Source: Takakia lepidozioides (Eukaryota; Plantae; Bryophyta). Taken from it: a stretch of DNA of 64,000 nucleotides. Below, piece after piece: positions 4,401-61,765 of this stretch (positions are counted from its first letter, which is position 1; every line of letters begins with the position of its first letter). The notes below the pieces were generated by a model. The model saw only the letters and a list, made by a program, of their open reading frames with translations. It had not been told where the DNA came from and searched no databases. The stretch spans positions 72,602,001 to 72,666,000 of the forward strand of contig CM060731.1 of assembly GCA_030704615.1 (NCBI GenBank). The letters are read 5' to 3'. Both the position numbers and the translations under genes were made by a program.

Positions 4401-7400
4401 CTCAGGAACAAAGGAGAGAATTAGTGCCTATCTCAAACAAAATGCACCCAATGGGATCAAGCAATCTTTGGGAAATTTGATCCATGTATGATGTGTATCT
4501 GCACAACAGTTGGTGCATGCGGAGGCTGAGAGGAAGAAAGCGTTGACGCGTGTCGAAGAGCTCCGGAAGGACATTGACATAAGTATGAACAGCTTTATGG
4601 TGGCCGAAAAGCTTGGGAAAGAAGTGGCTGCCAAAGTTAAAGAATCCCACTTAGCAGTATGCAGCACTGAACTCTGGGACTCTGGGCTGATTATGATCAT
4701 AACTATAAATTCTGCTATTGTACAGGTTTTGCAATCAATTCCTGTGGGTTCCACCAAATCCAATATTGGAGAGTTTTAGTGCCCGTCAAGGCTGCTCATG
4801 GTGTCAGCTGTCTGACGGTCTGATTTGCACAAAGTATCTCTTGTTTGTAGCAGTGAATCTTTAGTGATCATATGATGCACGGCTGTGTTCGTGGCACAAT
4901 CCGTGATAGGACTCCGGAAGTTGCCAAGGTAGAGTAAGTCCTTCATCTATGTTTGCGCTTGGATGAAATCTACTCAATTCTGTCAAGCAGAAATATTGTC
5001 ATCAGAATCTAGCCGAGTCCTGTCTTTCTCCATGACAGTTAAATCCAAGAGAAAATTGGAAGTGTTTTTAGCATGATTAAATGTCAGATGGTATTGTTTC
5101 ATTGGGGGAAAAGGTGCAAGTGCTGGAGAAAGAAGTAATGGTATGTGTAGAAGTGGACAGCAAGAGGAACCAGCACATCACAGAGCTTACCAACATGCGA
5201 GAACGGTTGTCCCGTGTTGCTGCTGTTAAAGTATAGTCTCTCACCAACTTCTTTGTTGTCTTGGACAAGACATTCTCTGAAAACGATTTGACTGTGCTAC
5301 TGTAACATCTCTTTTGACCCCTCTTTTCATTGTCAGACCTTTACGGACAAAACCTCTCTGTAGAATGTGAACATGGTTTGCTTGAATTCCAAGCATACAG
5401 CTTCCAGTTGTAATCATTCCCTCTTAAGAATTTCTTGGAACATACTGAGGTACTGAGGTCTATATAAGTCATTTTGTGATTGCAGCATTCAAAGTGGAGA
5501 GAAACCGTGGAGAAAGTAGGCCTGCAAGAGAATTTTCTGGAGAACTTCCAGAAGAGAGAGATAGAACTGCAGCAGCAATACAAAGAATTTACAGTGCTTT
5601 ACAATTTGGTCCGCAGTCAGCGGAACAAATATGCTGGCCTCATTCAGGTTTGTTGCAGTGTTGCTTTGACAATATCGTCCTCACTTCCCTCTGTTCTCTT
5701 TCAACATTCGATGGCTGCTTTCTCCTCATCTCTCAGTCTGTCAAAGAGTTCACAAATCATGGTTAGATCTTCCAAAGCACTGAGTCTACTCTGGGAGACA
5801 GGCAAGCGCAGTGACCATTGAGGAGATGAAAGACAAAGTCAAGACTTGGAGCCAGGAAGTGGAGCAGCTCCAAAGTGAGGTTGTTTATAAGGAAAAAGTA
5901 CTCAGGAGGATGCATACAGAATATTCAGCAAGTGTAAAAGGGCGCTCAGCAGTGCGCGATGAGATCACTAAGTGTGGGCTGGTTTTGAAGGAAAAAAAGG
6001 TTTATTTACTTTCAGCTATCTCTGATGCAGTGTGAGTTATTGACAGCCTGTTGCTCTCATGCAATAATTCCCTACGTAAAGTTCTTTGCTCGAATCAGCC
6101 TGGAAAAGCCCTTTCAAATGCCCATGCAACAGTCCAGCTAGTGGTCTTGAGTGTTTCTACCTGGCTGCTAGAGCTGGATATTCAGTTAGAAGCAGGTCAT
6201 ATTACAGCTTAAATTGGCCTAGCAGCACAGGCAGCTTAAATGGTGGCTCCTGTGAGTGACCAGGATGCATTGGGTGAGACAGTTTGTTGCGGAAGAGCAA
6301 GAGCTGGAAATAGTGAACGTGGAAGCCATTATCAATAAGGCCGAGAAGGATATGGTGAGGGCGCGTAAGATTTATGGTCTAGCTGTGAAAGATCGCAACC
6401 ACACTGGAATAGCTCTTATTGATCGAAACGACGAGCTCTGCATTCTTTATGAAAAAGCAAACGTTCAGGTCTTTATGCTCTGCCACAAAATGGGTCTGAT
6501 GGGTATTCCATGTTGCTGTAAGTGTAGCAATAGAGACATGCCACCAATGTGGGGAGCTGAAGTCTGTGAGAAGGACACCCTCTGTTGAAGGTTGATTTAG
6601 GATTCTGTGGCTAAGAGCTACTGGAGGTCTGACAACAGAAATAGAATTCATGTAATGAATTGCAAGTGACCATGCTTCTAATGAACTGGTAGACAGTGCA
6701 GTTTCTGATTGAACATCTAGATATTTTCAATTGGCACTGCATACATCCATCCCACCAGGACTTACAATGAGCTGTTGGTTGACATTGGTGATATGGCATG
6801 TAGGTGGAGCTGTTGAAGCATTCAGAAGTGGAGCTCACCAAGCGCAATGATGAGATAAACTACATGAGGCTGGCATGCAGGCTCACCCATCAATCTAATG
6901 TTACTCAGCACAAAACCACTCCTAATCCGGATTCAGTTTATGCTGAGTTGAAAGATCTCAAGGAGCAGGTATGCCTCTTGTTGCTTATCTGAATCTCATC
7001 TCCTATTTACTGCTATATTTGGAAGGTGTGACAAAAACCAAAAGAGGGAATATAAACTTGAACATTGGCAAGGTGTAAGAAGCACCTTGGAGGCCCCAAA
7101 ACCAGGGTGACTAAAGCCCCCATACAAGAAACCAACTAGCCTTAACCCTTCTACACAGACACCTAAAAAGGAGCACCAACCCAGTAGGGGCCAAAGGCAG
7201 CCCACTGTCTCCTTTGCAAATTCAATAACCAAGTCGGACTGAAAATGGAGGACAGTCTGTTATAGAGTACTAAGAACAAAAATATTGAAAACTGGGAGGA
7301 TATTGGATGGGAGCAGGAATCTAACTTCTAGGTTGGATGGGGGAAAAGATGGAGAAAGCCACACTGGATGTGAGTCAGCTATCAGAGTTGGTGGAGAAGC

Positions 7401-9890
7401 CCAGCAACTTGGCCCGATGGCGGGTTCTACCAGGGAGAGATAACACCACCCTCGAGTTAACAGGAAAAGAAGCTGCGATTCAGGAGTTTCTTTCTGCCAA
7501 GGAAGACCAGGCCTATGAGAAGGACCTCGTTCTTGAAGAGGTGTAAAGTTGCTTCCTTCCTTTCTCTCCTTAGCTATATACCATTGGTGTAAACATCTAT
7601 CTTGTTCATCGTATATATAATAATAGATAGTATAACTTCCACAGTAAGCCCAAATAACTTATCACCAAAGAACGAATTAAAAAGAAGATCTGATTTTGAG
7701 TAACATTTCTGATATCAATGACTAAATGCCTTGTGAAAGGATGAGTAGCCTCTGAACACACAGTTGTACTCCTAGTGAATCTTAATACATGTGGGAGGAG
7801 AAATGATGTTCTGTCAAGCTCTGTCACACCCTATCCTGACACTATCTGGAGACTGTGTGGATACCTTGGTGAGGGATGCAGAGAACATCATAGAAAGCAG
7901 TAATGTATCAGGGTGCTATTATCCCTTGTCTATGACATCATCATTGTACAACTTTGGTTTTGGGGTGAGGTGACGCTTTGGGCCCATGATGTTGCGAATC
8001 CATCTGATCAGCCTGTACCTGCTTGATTTTGCACAAGCAGATTGTCGAGCTTAGGGTGGCTAGGTTGAACTGAGATGGTAGGATCTTTATGAGACGCAAA
8101 TGTATTTTTTTAGTCTTCTTTCAGTCTCGAGCATCAAGCAGTGAATCCAAGCTGCACTACAGTATGGGGAGATGGATGCCTAGCTATTATTCAAGTAACT
8201 CCTTGATGTTTCTCAGGTGACGTCGTTAGCAGATGCTTTGCTACGGAAGACTGCCCTAGCACGACCTGAGTCCATCAGAATAGGCAAGCGTGTGAGTGAG
8301 TACCAGCGGCATCTGCACAGTATCACCCGCCAGATGATGGCCACCGTTTCAGAGCTCTCCCTCGTCCAGGTGGTACTCTCCTTGACTACACAAGAAATCA
8401 GCTCTGTCTGTTCCTACAAGAGAAGCTTGTGTGTATACTTGGTTTTCTTCTCACAACTCCTTTAAGAGCTCATTGCCTCATAATGCTGAACATAAGGGAA
8501 GACCTGGAGAAGGCCGATTCACTCAAGGTATGAACAGAGTAATCAAAGCAATACCTCATTCTCCTAGTAAGCTCTCAAACTCATTATGATAGTGACATCG
8601 GGCTCTAGTACACATGCCAACCAATCAGCAATGAATTGTGGTTGGAGGCAAGGTTCTTGACTTTTCCTCCAGCCAGATGAATTCCTTTCATCATGGTAGA
8701 GCTTCAGGTCTGTGATTGTGAACTGTAGAGGCACAGACTAGTTCAGACAGGCTATGTGATATTAATCCATTTTCTTCTTCAAGGTATTCTACTCCAATGT
8801 ACTCTCCTCTTGGTATCAGTCAAGAGCCAGTCAAATTATAAGTTGGCTCCCACCTCATGAGTTATGACCAGCCTTTGTGGAAGCTAATAGAGCGTACATT
8901 CAACCACAAATGGTAATTTTGGCAGGCAACAGCCATGAGTATGAAGCAAGAGAAGGAAACAGCTCAGGTGCAACTAGATGATGCATATATACGTCTTGAA
9001 GCTGGAGAGGTTCGTTCACCATTCACTCCTACTTTGCAGCTCCTGTTCCTTTCAGAGTCTCTGTATCTATTTGCAGTGAGTATTTGCTGTATTGCCAGCC
9101 GATGCTTGTTCCGCGCCCGTCATATCATATGGCTATTCTTCTCCTCTGACAAAGACATTCTCACCAATCCTGTGTACGCGCCAGTGGCTCTCTTAAGTGA
9201 GCAATTGGAGTTTCTTCTGGACTGCTTGATCCTATTTTACTTACCCTGTAAGACTGAGTTGTGCAGGCCCCGACAGAGGATGCGGAGAGGTTTTGGAATA
9301 ATATCGTAAGAGACATTGCACTGCTTCGCAAAATGGAAGCTGGCCGAAAGATTTTGCAGCAAGAGGACGAAAAAGAGCGAGAAGCTCGAGGACAGCATAA
9401 GCCCCAGTATTGTCCCTACTCTCTAAGCAAGTTTCTTTCTTTTGCTTCTAGCAAGGAAAATAAATAACAAATGATGAACAAAAGTGGTCCAGTTGTTGTT
9501 TTCACGCAGATTGATTCAACCTGTATGTGAAGTGAGCTAGTTTTTCAGTGGTTAGAATCTCAAAGGCTCGACTGCAGACAGTTAGATTTTGACGAGTCTG
9601 ATCTGGAAAATTGCCAATAATGTAGGCGAGGAAGAAAATGATGACTTGCAAATGAGAAGTGCTTTCCTTAAGAACTGAACTGACTTTTCAAACTTGAATG
9701 GCATCTGATGATTGTCTTGTCAATTTTCAGACCTGGGGAAAGCACAGCAGAGCAAAGGCCAAATGCATATGTTGCCGAGCAATTGGGGCTGCCCAAGCCT
9801 TTTGGGAAAAATGCACCCTTCCGACCATCAGAGCGTGGAAGTACCATGCGGCATATTCGAAAACCAGAACCACAGCCTGTTGAGACATGA
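1483..9890 (+). CDS. CCDC146: Multi-exon coiled-coil flagellar protein, CCDC146/MBO2-like; 5' end probably incomplete or outside the window
   Basis: Coiled-coil exons, mostly with AG/GT borders, at approx. 1483-1599, 2297-2371, 2916-3101, 4510-4620, 5088-5230, 5486-5647, 5800-5999, 6280-6468, 6804-6969, 7332-7541, 8217-8369, 8926-9009, 9267-9390 and 9731-9890. Recognisable motifs: [35 protein letters not shown], and C-terminal [40 protein letters not shown]. Confidence 0.75.
4140..4210 (-). mobile_element. 3'-terminal fragment of a dispersed LINE family (intronic)
   Basis: gttgtttgctgtagccgtgtggccatagacccc...ccagtttgg recurs at ~44275-44325 and ~46205-46250, and as the reverse complement at ~10910-10960. 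Confidence 0.5.
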
Positions 9891-56530: not shown

Positions 56531-56993
56531 TCATCTTCTTGTAGTGATAATGAAAGTGAAGATAATGGAAACCCTCCACTCATGAATCCACTCAATCACA
56601 TAAACTAAGTCAAGCCAAGGGCACCCTTGCTAAGGGAATCCACCCTACAAAGCACTCACCACACTCCCTCTCAATACCTAGAGCTATGGAGGTGAGAGAG
56701 GCTCATGGAGGCTCAACTACAAGAAGATGAGCCTTCTCCATTCTCATAAGGGGAAAACCTATCCCCATGTCCCAAGTGAGGCGTCGAGGAAGCTCATCTT
56801 CTTGTAGTTGAGCCTCCATGAGCCTCTCTCACCTCCATAGCTCTAGGTATTGAGATGGAGTGTGGTGAGTGCTTTGTAGGGTGGATTTCCTTAGCAAAGG
56901 TGCCCTTGGCTTAATTTAGTTTATGTGATTGAGTGGATTCATGAGTGGAGGGTTTCCATTATCTTCACTTTCATTATCACTACAAGAAGATGA
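56531..56993. repeat. ~202-bp inverted repeat with ~59-bp spacer
   Basis: 56531-56732 is the near-perfect reverse complement of 56792-56993. 56716-56787 is also directly repeated at 56979-57049. Confidence 0.92.
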
Positions 56994-57337
56994 GCCTCCT
57001 CCATCCTCACAAGGGGAAAACCTATCCCCATGTCCCAAGTGAGGCTCGACATCTCACTTGGCATGTGAGACCAAATGAAGTCCCATCACACAAAATATAA
57101 ATATAAATATCTAAAATGTCCTAGTTAACTAGAAGTAGGTAATTCTAGATAACCATGACTAAAACCATGACAACTGCTTCATTGTTTTTGTTGTCTTTGG
57201 AATATCTAACTAGACTGTTTTTTAATATAATTACTCCCACGACTGCTTGAACGGAGGTTGTTCCCGTCTTTCGCGAGTGAAAGGACGAAAGAAAAAGGAG
57301 GTGCCCAAACCGACTCCGCACATGCCACGTGCCATTG

Positions 57338-58790
57338 CCTAAACGCGTCGTGGCCATCGACCCGGGCCAATAATACCTCTACATGGGAGTGGTGTATTCG
57401 TCCAAAGGAGAGGCTGCGCTGAACAAGCCGTGGGTGGGACAAAGTGGACCGGTTCCAAATGACCCGCTGCAGCAAGTCGTGGTTCTACACCATATGCGGA
57501 TACCGGCGGCGGGCCAAGCTGACGAAGAGGTGGATAGCCAGTAACCAAGCCGCAGTTCAATTCGAGGGACAACACCGTCTTCACTAAGGTGGCAACTTTA
57601 GCGAGGTATATCCTGTATGCGGCGTCAATGTTGACACATCTCCTGACGTTGAATGAGTTCTATGTGGTGAATAGAGGTTGGGTAGCGCGCGAGCATGTTC
57701 ACGTGAGCACAAGGGCATCTTCCCCGAATTTCTGCGAAATTTCCGTGAAATATCTGCAGCGAAATGAAATTGGCGAAACTAACAATTATGCGAAACTAAC
57801 ACATAAAGAACAAGTAGCCCCTATACCTGATGAACATGTTACCCTATAGGCATGGTTTTTTCTCAATGCGAAACCCACCGCTGCTTAGGTTTGTCCCATA
57901 TCACATATCATTTCTCAATGCGAAATTCAGTTTGTGCCCATAGCACATATAATTTCCCACTGCGGAATTCACCTAACTATTTCTCACCGCGAAATTCAGT
58001 TTGTGCCCATAGCACATATCATTTCTCAATGCGAAATTCAGTTTGTGCCATAGCACATATCATTTTTCAATGCGAAATTCACCTAAACTATCATTTCTCA
58101 CTGCGAAATTTAGTTTGTGCCCATAGCACATATCATTTCTCAATGCGAAATTCACCAACGCCGTTATAGGTTTAGGGTTTCTGGCTACACTACTGAAGGT
58201 TTTGCCTCGCTGAATTGGTGCAGATGTACCGTACAAATTCACCAAAAACTATACCCGCTTATGGTTTTATTCCGTTTTGAAATCATATAACTCCTATGAC
58301 CGAGGTTAAAAAATATAAAACTCCCATGACCATAGGTCGTGCTAACGTGAGCTCCCAGGATATCAACCCCCTAATGAATAAGAGGATGAGGGAGATGAGG
58401 TGGGCGACGTGGATAAAGACGGAACGGGCCTACGCGAATGACCCCACGACGGTGGTAGCCTTCCGGGACGCCTCTTTCGCTAGCCCCGGAACGAAAACCA
58501 CGCCAACCTCCAAGCTACAAAAAAAGGTACGGGAGAAGGCCGGCGAGATGGTGATGGTGGACGAGTTTAGAACTAGCCAACTATGTTGCGGTTAGCAGCG
58601 AAAGGATGGAGGCCATGCCCCAGTGCCGATTCCCGGAAGCATGGGGCGTTGCGGCTCATAGGCGGTCCAACTGTGTGCCAACACAGCCTCCTATGGGACT
58701 ACATGGAACCGAGACGTCAACGCGGCGGTCAACATCATGCACCGGTTTTGGGAAATGAGGGACTCCCGGCCTCGCCGGAGGGGGTGCCCC
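57338..58790 (+). pseudogene. Fanzor1/TnpB-like RuvC RNA-guided nuclease relic, interrupted by a MITE
   Basis: Manual translation gives PKRVVAIDPG (57338-57367, RuvC-I), SKSWFYTICGY, LNEFY, then the insertion, then NKRMREMRWATWIKTERA, VVAFRDASF, VDEFRTSQLCC (58557 onward) and GTTWNRDVNAAVNI (58695-58736, RuvC-III). Several stops and frameshifts. Confidence 0.8.
57672..58373. mobile_element. MITE-like non-autonomous DNA transposon with internal ~41-bp tandem repeats
   Basis: Imperfect TIRs TAGAGGTTG.. and ..CAACCCCCTA, with subterminal IR gttcacgtgagcac / gtgctaacgtgagc. Flanks GTGAA and ATGAA. Internal catatcatttctcaatgcgaaattcagtttgtgcccatagca repeats at ~57880-58155. Confidence 0.7.
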
Positions 58791-59230
58791 GCCGAGGCAG
58801 CCCCGCCGCAGATCTCATTAAGACTGTCATAGTAACAGGCAATCCACGCTGAGCGGGGTGAGGGTGTAAACCCTCTCCACGACGATGCACAACTGTGAGT
58901 TTTGATACTCACATTGGCGAAGAGAATGGTTTGCCAAAAAGACAATGGTGATGATGTGAGACAACATGCGACTAGGGTTAAGGAAATCTGCAAAGGACGA
59001 TTGTGTGATTTGCCACCTACAGAGCAACATTTTGATTGAGGGGTACCTACCAAAGACCAGAAGTGGGTAAGGTGGCATCTAGCTGGAGTGGAGAGTTGGA
59101 AGAGAGAACATCTCACCATGGCTAATAAGGGCGAAAAGGAAGACATCAAGTCAAAACTGAAACAGTGATGAGCTCTTCGAACAGACTGAGATCTTAGAGC
59201 AAACTGTAGACATGAACTCACCACCGTGGC

Positions 59231-61765
59231 TCAACGTGGAGAATTGTTGTCAACATCAAGCACAAGCTTAAATTTCTCATATAACATCCAGGAAAGGCCT
59301 GATGAGGGCATCACTTTCAAGCTACTCGCACCAAGCCCTCTATAGAAGCCCTTTGCTCCCTCTTCATCTAGAATACTACGAATAGTGTCCAGCATGCTAT
59401 TTGGTGTTCTCCTTCCAAGAACTGCCCCTACTATCATCCTCTTCCGGGTTACCTCAAAAGGAAATGTTGCTGCACTAGAAGCCAAGCCTTCACACCCACA
59501 AGGGAAAAGTCGTGAGCTGAGTCACAGGGGCAAAAGTAGCATGGTCCACCACATGAAAGCAGTGAAAAAATATCACTCCATGATATCCCAAGAAACAGTT
59601 CCCTAGAATGCCTTTTGCACTCTTTCACCAGAAAAGCCTTGTCACCCTATATATTCAATTCTCTGCACATAGAAGAATCCAAGGCAAAACAACTGGACAG
59701 GGGAAGGGGAGAGAGAAAAATAAAGAAGCTCAAACTGCCCAAGGGCAAAAGTAGAACAACACATGAGAAACAGAAAGAGAAGAGGTGAGGTAGTGACCTG
59801 CAAAAGCACCAATTGTAAGGGTCTCCAAAGGCCCCAGTCGCTTTTGGTGAGTATGGTGGTGATATGCATGAGTGAGGGTATCATAAACAAAGTAATAAGC
59901 AGCACAATAGGGCACCAATCCTATCATCGTGGGAGCCAGACCCCCATAGAAGGCCCCTAAGCCCTCTTCTTGCGCTATCTTCCCAAAGGCCTGCCTAATG
60001 TTTTGGTAAGCTCCTGTATGCACCGTAAATCTGTCCTGCAATCCATGGAACATACTAACCAGATTCAACATCAGCAGACAACAAAATAGAAGAAGAAGAC
60101 TCTGGCCGAAGCCAGCAAAATTAAGGGCCCCTTCACCTCACAGCTGCTGTCCCTCTTTCCGGGGTGGGCTCTACACAACAATACAGTTGTATAGGGTTTG
60201 GACAAATGCTCCATTCTTGTGAACCGTGGGGCCTCTAGACATTCTCCCATCAGACATGTAGTGTTGCTGAAGTCCAAAGCTAATGATACAAAGATCTGTA
60301 CTTCATGTCACAAGTGTCCATGGCCAGATCCTGCCATCATGGCACACTACCCCTACCCAGAAACCTCCCCATTAAACAACTCTATGGAACACAAAAGAAC
60401 AAAAGAAAATCTCAAGGGGTTGGGTCACCATACATACCTTGAGGACTTCAAGGGGGTAGCACAAAACAGTGCTACACATTCCAGCTACTGCTCCTGCAAT
60501 CATCGAAGGTGATATCCAGCCTACGGGAACTTTTAATACATGACCCAGCACTCTGATCTGTGGGGAACCTTCAGTTGCCCACCGATTCTTGGCAGAAGAA
60601 ACAGCCCTCTTCACAGCTTCAAATGTTGACAGCTCAATTGCCTGCAAAGGAGCAGTGCGTAATGCATTGATCCCATTACCCCTCCATAGTCCACGCCAAC
60701 CATGTTTGTCAAGCACCTCATGCAGACTTCCAATAATGCTCTTTGAGCCAACACCTACAATCAGTCTTGTCCTGTAAACCATTATAATCCTTGATTCAGA
60801 TACAGCTGCACTTTCCTCATAACTGTTGCCAAAATTGCCAAGCCTTCCTGAGATATTACCATAGGCTCACTTGGACCACTTCGCACTTAAACTTCACAGT
60901 GGTCGGCAATCTGAAATTCTTGTTTCCAGTTGTACTGGAAGTTAAGGCCCACTACATCCATTTTCAACATCATGGGAGGAGCATTTGGTGCAGGTTCCCA
61001 GGCGCTTCTGAAAAAAACTGGTAGTTGACCACCTATAATCACTTTAATCCTGTTCCACTACTAGATCTCTTGCAAAATTCAACACGAAATTATTAACGAG
61101 AACAGCTCCCAACATATACATTTTTGTCCCAGAAGGCTACAAGGGTTTTTCATGGCCAACACCAGAGTCCATTGCTTTTTGGGCATCCTAGTCCTCGGGA
61201 TGGTATGTGCAACTACCAAATGTTATGCAAGTGTTTCCTTGAGCCAATTGAAACCAAAATCAGCTTCATTCTTCCCTGGTAAATTCTGCTAGAATCTTGT
61301 TATTGGGTGTGACACTCACCTTACAGTTTCAATGGGTGCCACAATGGACTTGGACAGAGCCCCTGATAATGCTCCACTTACAAATATTCGGAATTCCCTG
61401 CTTCTAAACCCTTCCTTCACCACAAAAGTTGAATGTTTGTAGTCTTTGACCCTTACATATAGAATAATATACACAAATCTCGCACCCATAATGCAATACA
61501 AACGTTGTGCTTAGCTGAGAAAGACCTGCGAATGAAGAATCGGGGACCTACACAACTATGCTTGCAAGAAAATTGCAGATATAAAGGAGGATATCGTGGA
61601 TATTGCGCAAATGCATAGACGCAAGAAGCACCTTTAGATCCGCATAAGATATGTAGAAGATAAAACAGAATCAAAACTCACCATCAAATTCTTCGAAAGA
61701 TCGCTGCCATTCGTCCGGAGCCTACTTGTGGGGTGTTCAACAATCGCTAACTTGTCCGATGTCAT
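59231..61765 (-). CDS. Mitochondrial carrier family protein, adenine nucleotide transporter BTL1-like (Brittle1-like)
   Basis: Three carrier signature repeats, PIETVRTR, PLEVLKDR and PFEVTRKR, with GLWRG, AFYGG and GFYRG. Exons at approx. 61765-61682, 61450-61320, 60772-60438, 60036-59798 and 59487-59231. 5' exon structure uncertain. Confidence 0.88.

Follow-up and report, generated by a model that had tools for sequence, protein, structure and literature searches.

The window, the whole 64,000-nucleotide (nt) stretch of contig CM060731.1 (positions 72,602,001 to 72,666,000) analysed here, carries on its + strand a broken gene with the motifs of Fanzor1. Fanzors are eukaryotic RNA-guided nucleases and are in development as compact genome editors. 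The broken copy, referred to below as the relic, contains about 927 base pairs (bp) of Fanzor-derived DNA and is very probably a dead member of a small Fanzor1 family with several copies in this nuclear genome, which is plant-like and probably that of a moss. Its parts are as follows, in window positions:

57297-58916, + strand: the whole relic, being the rear (RuvC) half of a Fanzor1 gene and its 3' tail, split by a 707 bp insertion; delimited by paralog depth, the end of an RNA contig and a profile match.
57338-57370, + strand: RuvC-I strand KRVVAIDPGQ, with the catalytic Asp at 57359-57361; translation, aligned to profile positions 312-321.
57374-57672, + strand: helical region between RuvC-I and RuvC-II in three frames (57374-57430, 57441-57548 and 57553-57672); collinear profile matches.
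57674-58374, no strand given: 701 bp non-autonomous element with terminal inverted repeats (TIRs); TIRs, subterminal repeats, target duplication and contigs of other copies.
58383-58592, + strand: RuvC-II region, with VVAFRD, the alternative catalytic Glu at 58563-58565 in VDEFRTS, and the start of the first zinc-finger pair, CCGC; PF07282, HMMER and profile.
58593-58661, + strand: damaged zinc-finger linker, with an extra nt at 58594, an nt lost after 58634 and a TAG at 58659-58661; paralog comparison.
58662-58829, + strand: second zinc-finger pair (last Cys changed to Ser), RuvC-III WNRDVNAAVNI with Asp at 58713-58715, and a C-terminal tail to the stops at 58830-58835; PF07282, NCBIfam guided_TnpB and profile positions 520-550.
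58830-58916, + strand: 87 nt non-coding tail with hairpins H1 (58860-58875) and H2 (58894-58913), ending in ..ATTG; folding, viral tails and a paralog RNA contig.

In direct translation of 57281-58829 the motif blocks are spread over all three frames of the + strand. The frame that follows that of KRVVAIDPGQ holds the basic helix SKSWFYTICGYRRRAKLTKRW, and the third holds LNEFYVVN, which reaches 57672. On the other side of 707 bp of unrelated DNA, where RMREMRWATWIKTERAY begins at 58383 on the + strand, there follow KRMREMRWATWIKTERAY, VVAFRDASF (58452-58478) and MVMVDEFRTSQLCCG, in which VDEFRTSQLC holds the Glu, and finally LCANTASYGTTWNRDVNAAVNIM, which carries the Asp of RuvC-III and continues to the stops. 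All five motifs picked out in an earlier sequence-only reading of this DNA are at the positions it gave, on this strand, and are in the right order once the insert is removed.

The catalytic site of Fanzors is rearranged, with an inert residue at the position of the RuvC-II Glu of TnpB and an alternative Glu before the zinc finger (PMC10530073), and the relic has this arrangement. VVAIDPG aligns with the DPGR of its relatives, the columns of WNRDVNAAVNI are invariant in the alignment of the six closest relatives (A2), and the alternative Glu is 33 residues downstream of AFRD (AYGD in the family), before the zinc finger. The residue at the canonical RuvC-II Glu position would be the inert one of AYGD in the family and the Arg at 58464-58466 here, if the positions are equivalent as they appear to be. 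The sequence-only reading had named a D-E-D set of RuvC motifs, and all three catalytic codons are indeed still present; the Glu of VDEF, however, is the 'alternative' Glu of the rearranged Fanzor site and not the canonical one of RuvC-II (PMC10530073). Three of the four zinc-finger Cys are retained, with two frameshifts and one stop in the linker.

Two stretches of the relic have collinear matches to Pfam PF07282 (Cas12f1-like TNB), 58377-58592 to positions 6-34 (E 0.0055) and 58662-58829 to positions 45-60 (E 0.0026), while the only NCBIfam match of the pieces is to the last 19 profile positions (371-389) of guided_TnpB, at E 0.015. An exhaustive HMMER search of 1.84e9 representative proteins with 58377-58592 gave 17 matches, about a dozen of which span the whole query at 42-60% identity. 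Among these are P0002 (561 aa), P0003 (698 aa) and P0005 (378 aa) at 45-49%, P0002 and P0003 being full-length proteins at 47-49%. Five of the 17 are repeat proteins in which several short stretches were matched, and they are unrelated. A word-index protein search with the same query found no candidate, which is uninformative about longer relatives.

In the reverse direction, tblastn with P0002 finds 58377-58754 in the window (E 5e-22), and there are weaker collinear tblastn matches of the relatives at 57344-57421, 57456-57533 and 57583-57675, with none elsewhere in the window. A 572-position profile was made from seven relatives, and the relic was read as eight stop-free pieces joined with an X at each break. 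This reading, of 278 residues, aligns end to end with profile positions 312-550 at 175 bits, and it is 37% identical to the relative P0018 over 265 residues. When the single pieces are compared with the profile of the relatives, the helical region 57374-57672 provides collinear matches to positions 347-385 and 391-434, and the RuvC-II region aligns to positions 419-499 (E 4e-20).

The assignment to Fanzor1 follows from what the relatives match. The only matches of P0003 in the PDB are SpuFz1 (8gkh, E 1.3e-7) and the Guillardia Fz1 (9cer, E 5.6e-7). A profile of the six closest relatives, built from alignment A2, matches SpuFz1 (8gkh, 4.5e-11), the Parasitella Fz1 (9cf0, 7.3e-9) and GtFz1 (9cer, 1.1e-7), and no Fanzor2, TnpB or Cas12 chain in the PDB at E up to 10, so that the Fanzor1-type identity claimed from the motifs holds. 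The motif order of SpuFz1, Parasitella parasitica Fz1 and GtFz1, D..(G)..DE(F/Y)xTS..CxxC..CxxC..WNRD, is that of the relic. In contrast to these proteins, which it matches distantly and through intermediates (E 1e-7 to 5e-11), the relic cannot be translated and does not have the N-terminal REC/WED half, the part that binds guide RNA and target DNA. Profile positions 1-307, which make up that half, have no match anywhere in the window, either by tblastn or with the family hidden Markov model (HMM) in six frames, and the same searches found no second Fanzor copy in the window. In the absence of the REC/WED half, the relic is a fragment of a Fanzor1 member and not a functional member.

The 701 bp element that separates the two parts of the gene has imperfect TIRs of about 40 nt at its ends, eight subterminal 21 nt repeats (TTTCTCAATGCGAAATTCA-like), and a perfect 6 bp target duplication, TGAATA, at 57668-57673 and 58375-58380, which can also be read as 8 bp with two mismatches. 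In a DNA sequencing run (X1), the match of 32 contigs from other copies begins precisely at 57674, and their flanks all differ. The element is covered at a depth of 6000-9000, compared with 28.5 for single-copy sequence, which means that there are hundreds of copies. It is a high-copy TIR element resembling a miniature inverted-repeat transposable element (MITE) that inserted into a Fanzor copy already in place. Removal of 57674-58380 rebuilds the frame as ..FYVVN-K-RMREM.., and because of the TGAATA duplication the excision of 57672-58378, as first proposed, gives the same product and equally restores the frame. The MITE-like insertion splitting the gene is therefore as described in the sequence-only reading; its size, given there as 702 bp, is 701 bp plus the 6 bp target duplication. 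Fragments of the element are present in both of two transcriptome assemblies (RNA runs X5 and X6), and its CpG observed/expected ratio (o/e) is 1.0.

The insertion is one of many lesions. In place of the DPGR of the family the relic has Gln for Arg at 57369, where seven paralog contigs have the G that gives Arg, and an in-frame TAA follows immediately after DPGQ (57371-57373). There is one extra nt at 57323/4, a frameshift at 57431-57440, and a loss of 5 nt after 57550, where one paralog contig retains CGTGA. On the 3' side of the insert, Arg replaces the family Gly at 58464-58466, an extra nt at 58594 makes a TAG at 58593-58595, one nt is lost after 58634, the TAG at 58659-58661 stands where the paralogs have TAC (Tyr), and Ser replaces the fourth zinc-finger Cys at 58689-58691. 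By comparison with the paralog contigs, the changes at 57369, at 57323/4, after 57550, at 58594, after 58634 and at 58659-58661 are private to the relic. In summary, the copy has a 701 bp TIR insertion, two in-frame stops, four frameshifts and the loss of about 310 N-terminal codons, and its reading frame is interrupted in at least seven places. These lesions exceed those listed in the sequence-only reading, whose description of a 5'-truncated pseudogene split by a MITE-like insertion agrees with the missing N-terminal half and with the stops and frameshifts. To judge by its sequence, the locus should be excluded from expression as a protein and its nuclease activity ruled out, and a functional guide RNA from this copy has most likely been lost as well.

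About half a dozen paralogous contigs are present in X1 at 80-95% identity to the relic (6-7 contigs at informative sites), and the repeat unit common to the relic and these paralogs is only about 1.6 kb. The 5' boundary of the relic, at about 57297, is the point from which these contigs lift the depth above the single-copy 28.5. One of the paralogs can also be followed in RNA. A 441 nt contig of X6 spans 58482-58776; it shows 30 differences, has 18 gap letters and is free of the three relic lesions at 58594, 58634 and 58659-58661, so that at least one paralog is transcribed. The suggestion that intact relatives may exist in the genome is borne out to this extent, that a transcribed paralog is free of these three lesions, but no intact copy was seen.

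The right end of the element would lie at 58916, give or take about 15 nt, because a paralog-derived RNA contig from X6 matches 58868-58916 and diverges beyond this point. Fanzors that have been characterised encode their guide RNA at the 3' end of the gene, from where it extends into the flank (PMC10432273). The tail of the relic folds better than its shuffles (z -3.8 for 58830-58935 and z -2.4 for 58830-58930), with H1 and H2 present in both folds, and it may be a remnant of a guide-RNA (omega-RNA) scaffold. No inverted copy of the right-end hairpin is present upstream, no Rfam family reaches its gathering score over the whole window, and the tail region (58750-58960) has no DNA similarity to the loci L001-L006 of the relatives.

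Several points weigh against this identification of the relic and its limits. Taken singly, the two PF07282 matches score 17.3 and 18.3 bits, under the curated cut-off of 26.3, and a PDB search with the window pieces themselves gave nothing significant, so the route to Fanzor1 passes through intermediate relatives and not directly from the window. The 5' end is a reading of summed contig depth rather than of an alignment. Of the transposon that carried the gene, the relic preserves neither a left end nor a TIR or target duplication, and the candidate scaffold is proposed from its fold and its likeness to other tails.

The history is very probably as follows. The ancestral element encoded an RNA-guided RuvC endonuclease of about 560-700 aa, in which the rearranged site of Asp, alternative Glu and Asp was combined with a zinc finger of the form CxxC..CxxC, and behind the gene lay a hairpin-rich 3' tail, which in characterised Fanzors is the guide-RNA scaffold running into the flank. 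The carrier of the gene may have been a TIR transposon. The present copy has only the rear 250-odd codons and the tail; the 701 bp TIR element then entered it, and stops, frameshifts and substitutions at conserved positions have been acquired.

To the right of the relic there is one further annotated feature:

59210-60773, - strand: expressed mitochondrial-carrier gene with exons 59210-59486, 59797-60034 and 60437-60773; exon joints in X5 and X6.

These exons, which were translated singly and not as a joined spliced model, are joined across GT-AG introns of 310 and 402 nt in both transcriptome assemblies, and the 3' end of the gene is about 300 bp from the right end of the relic. An X1 DNA contig agrees with the window at every position from 58718 until past 60800 and links the two, which places the relic in a nuclear and eukaryotic setting. 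The spliced gene is also one of the grounds on which the host is taken to be a land plant, probably a moss.

To the left, 56531-56993 is a near-perfect foldback of 463 bp (90% identity to its own reverse complement over 471 aligned positions, centred at about 56762), probably another non-autonomous element, with an additional 72 bp direct repeat (56716-56787 and 56979-57049) just upstream of the relic. Between the foldback and the start of the Fanzor homology lies a stretch of 31% GC at 57060-57296. It was considered whether this AT-rich stretch could be an intron, with 'TEVVPVF' at 57251 as the remnant of an upstream TDG strand, and this was rejected, since the paralogs add depth only from about 57297 onwards and no exon could be found further upstream.

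The nearest relatives found for the relic are viral. P0002 and P0018 are on one 395 kb metagenomic contig, with VLTF3, a D5-type primase-helicase, Bro-N, ATG8 and eIF-1A as neighbours, and P0007 is on a contig of 32 kb that encodes a capping enzyme and an RNA triphosphatase in separate genes, along with an HNH endonuclease and numerous glycosyltransferases. The Atlas clusters nearest to this capping enzyme are 81-96% viral, of the Nucleocytoviricota. These contigs are giant-virus genomes. Single-protein scans of IMG/VR with the neighbours of the viral Fanzors found no close relatives.

The P0002 and P0018 genes lie in two 2.17 kb elements (L001:5653-7819 and L087:5823-7988) that are 90% identical over 1978 bp and bounded by inverted repeats of 23-30 bp (L001:5653-5682/7790-7819 and L087:5823-5845/7966-7988). 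Each consists of the Fanzor gene only, with a 133 nt three-hairpin tail before the right repeat. Since neither carries a transposase gene, they would need to be moved in trans. The relic is 36-37% identical to the proteins of these two elements over 244-265 aa, and shares with them the layout of open reading frame (ORF), stop, hairpin tail and a right end ..ATTG, as read at L001, the outermost repeat letters of L087 being different. The viral elements, however, are intact, with 30 bp TIRs and three hairpins in 133 nt, whereas the relic has two hairpins in 87 nt and no left end.

A maximum-likelihood tree was built from the RuvC halves. In it the relic falls together with P0002, P0018 and P0007 (84/96; clade starred, 97/98), and the relic and the viral clade are both within a starred (100/99) clade of nine members that also holds eukaryote-type copies. 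This larger clade is separate from 178 giant-virus Fanzor1 loci of IMG/VR, which are only 22-30% identical. The placement of the relic is provisional because its branch is long (1.11).

The eukaryote-type copies P0004, P0006, P0008, P0011, P0012, P0014 and P0016 all lose similarity at the same point (columns 600-640 of alignment A1), after CCACK..M.GMP (often ..PVTG). This shared break is likely to be a common intron read through by intron-blind gene calls. At that point the relic and the viral copies run straight on to WNRD.

The composition of the relic is also distinct. Its GC content is 0.57 and its CpG o/e 0.93, against 0.47 and a median of 0.40 for the window, the viral contigs having a GC content of 0.57. 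The relic with its insert (57001-58980) is the sole part of the window with a CpG o/e of at least 0.85 (0.9-1.04, the 95th percentile of the window being 0.67), which suggests a recent arrival or the absence of methylation beside an expressed gene.

From these relatives it is possible, though doubtful, that the Fanzor1 family reached the plant lineage via a giant virus (Nucleocytoviricota), the relic being debris either of a virus-vectored element or of an endogenised viral insertion, and not of a transposon long resident in the plant. Such an origin would be compatible with the relic being a dead copy of a plant nuclear family. It is favoured by the grouping of the relic with P0002, P0018 and P0007, by the hallmark genes on their contigs and by the composition of the relic, and there is a precedent in Chlamydomonas reinhardtii, where a giant endogenous virus has Fanzor1 elements, fragments of which are in the host chromosomes (10.1101/2024.09.03.611062). 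The pattern is alike in that the nearest relatives are viral and the host has a fragment with a right end, but the virus and host copies in Chlamydomonas are 80% identical in DNA and have a Tc1/Mariner transposase, whereas here the similarity is at the protein level and the viral elements have no transposase.

Against this route, the protein identity is only 36-47%, and the window has no DNA similarity to the relatives' loci L001-L004. The support in the tree is moderate and the branch of the relic is long. There are no viral hallmark genes in the flanks of the relic, which consist of the foldback repeat, AT-rich DNA and the spliced mitochondrial-carrier gene 300 bp away. The sample of eukaryotic relatives is thin, and the transfer could have been in either direction. 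It is rather unlikely that the genome is that of an early-diverging, moss-like land plant with a Fanzor1 family acquired from or common to giant viruses and with at least one paralog that is transcribed and possibly intact.

That this locus is a still working, intron-containing gene, with the stops and shifts confined to introns and the insert removed by splicing, is very unlikely. The RNA contig resembling 58482-58776 might be taken as its product, but with its 30 differences, its 18 gap letters and its freedom from the relic lesions it is of paralog origin, and there is no contig at least 95% alike to the Fanzor-derived parts of the relic in X5 or X6. Among the exon joints listed, none spans 57673 to 58381. 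The stops and shifts are inside conserved blocks, namely after DPGQ, in CxxC and at the conserved Tyr, and the N-terminal half is missing from the window.

A fragment of prokaryotic or organellar TnpB (of IS200/IS605 or IS607), present through contamination or direct bacterial transfer, is a highly improbable source. TnpB (of the ISDra2 type) and Fanzor2 share with Fanzor1 the RuvC and zinc-finger (PF07282) superfamily and the RNA-guided mechanism, and the weak guided_TnpB match over the last 19 profile positions would be consistent with this source. The motif layout, however, is of the rearranged Fanzor type, and the profile of the relatives matches Fanzor1 and no chain of TnpB or Fanzor2. 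The relic is in a eukaryotic chromosome, interrupted by a host MITE of hundreds of copies and physically joined to a spliced nuclear gene, with no TnpA-like ORF near it and no IS607 context.

A chance co-occurrence of short motifs from unrelated repeats, a case named in the sequence-only reading as a refutation, would account for the sub-threshold scores of single pieces and is of negligible probability, since five collinear pieces match one profile in order at 175 bits and the tblastn match of E 5e-22 has no equal elsewhere in the window.

Fanzor1 has been published from fungi, protists, some animals, giant viruses and algae, the streptophyte Klebsormidium among them. In Saito et al., 'Streptophyta' is listed in a figure legend only, and no report of a Fanzor from a moss, bryophyte or other land plant was found in the literature searched. 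A precedent is KnFNuc of the streptophyte alga Klebsormidium nitens, a Fanzor1 in 5 intronless copies that is active in vitro and in human cells (PMC10530073). By description, which is the only level at which the two are likened, it resembles the relic family in being multi-copy and from the streptophyte lineage, and the relic has no intron between CxxC and WNRD; KnFNuc, however, is intact and active and comes from an alga, while the relic is broken and its host is apparently a moss-like land plant.

The relic itself is without function and is ordinary debris. It is of use as a dated and clearly bounded member, from which the family's right end and tail can be fixed and the lesions private to this one copy recognised. 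The family is of modest importance, as a Fanzor1 from a land plant that may be connected to giant viruses: a decayed Fanzor1 family in a moss-like genome widens the host range, and the position of its nearest relatives on giant-virus contigs provides a testable route of spread. Were the family acquired from or common to giant viruses, with a paralog that is transcribed and possibly intact, this would be the first RNA-guided nuclease of its kind from a land plant, and its copies would record at the molecular level that giant viruses have infected bryophytes.

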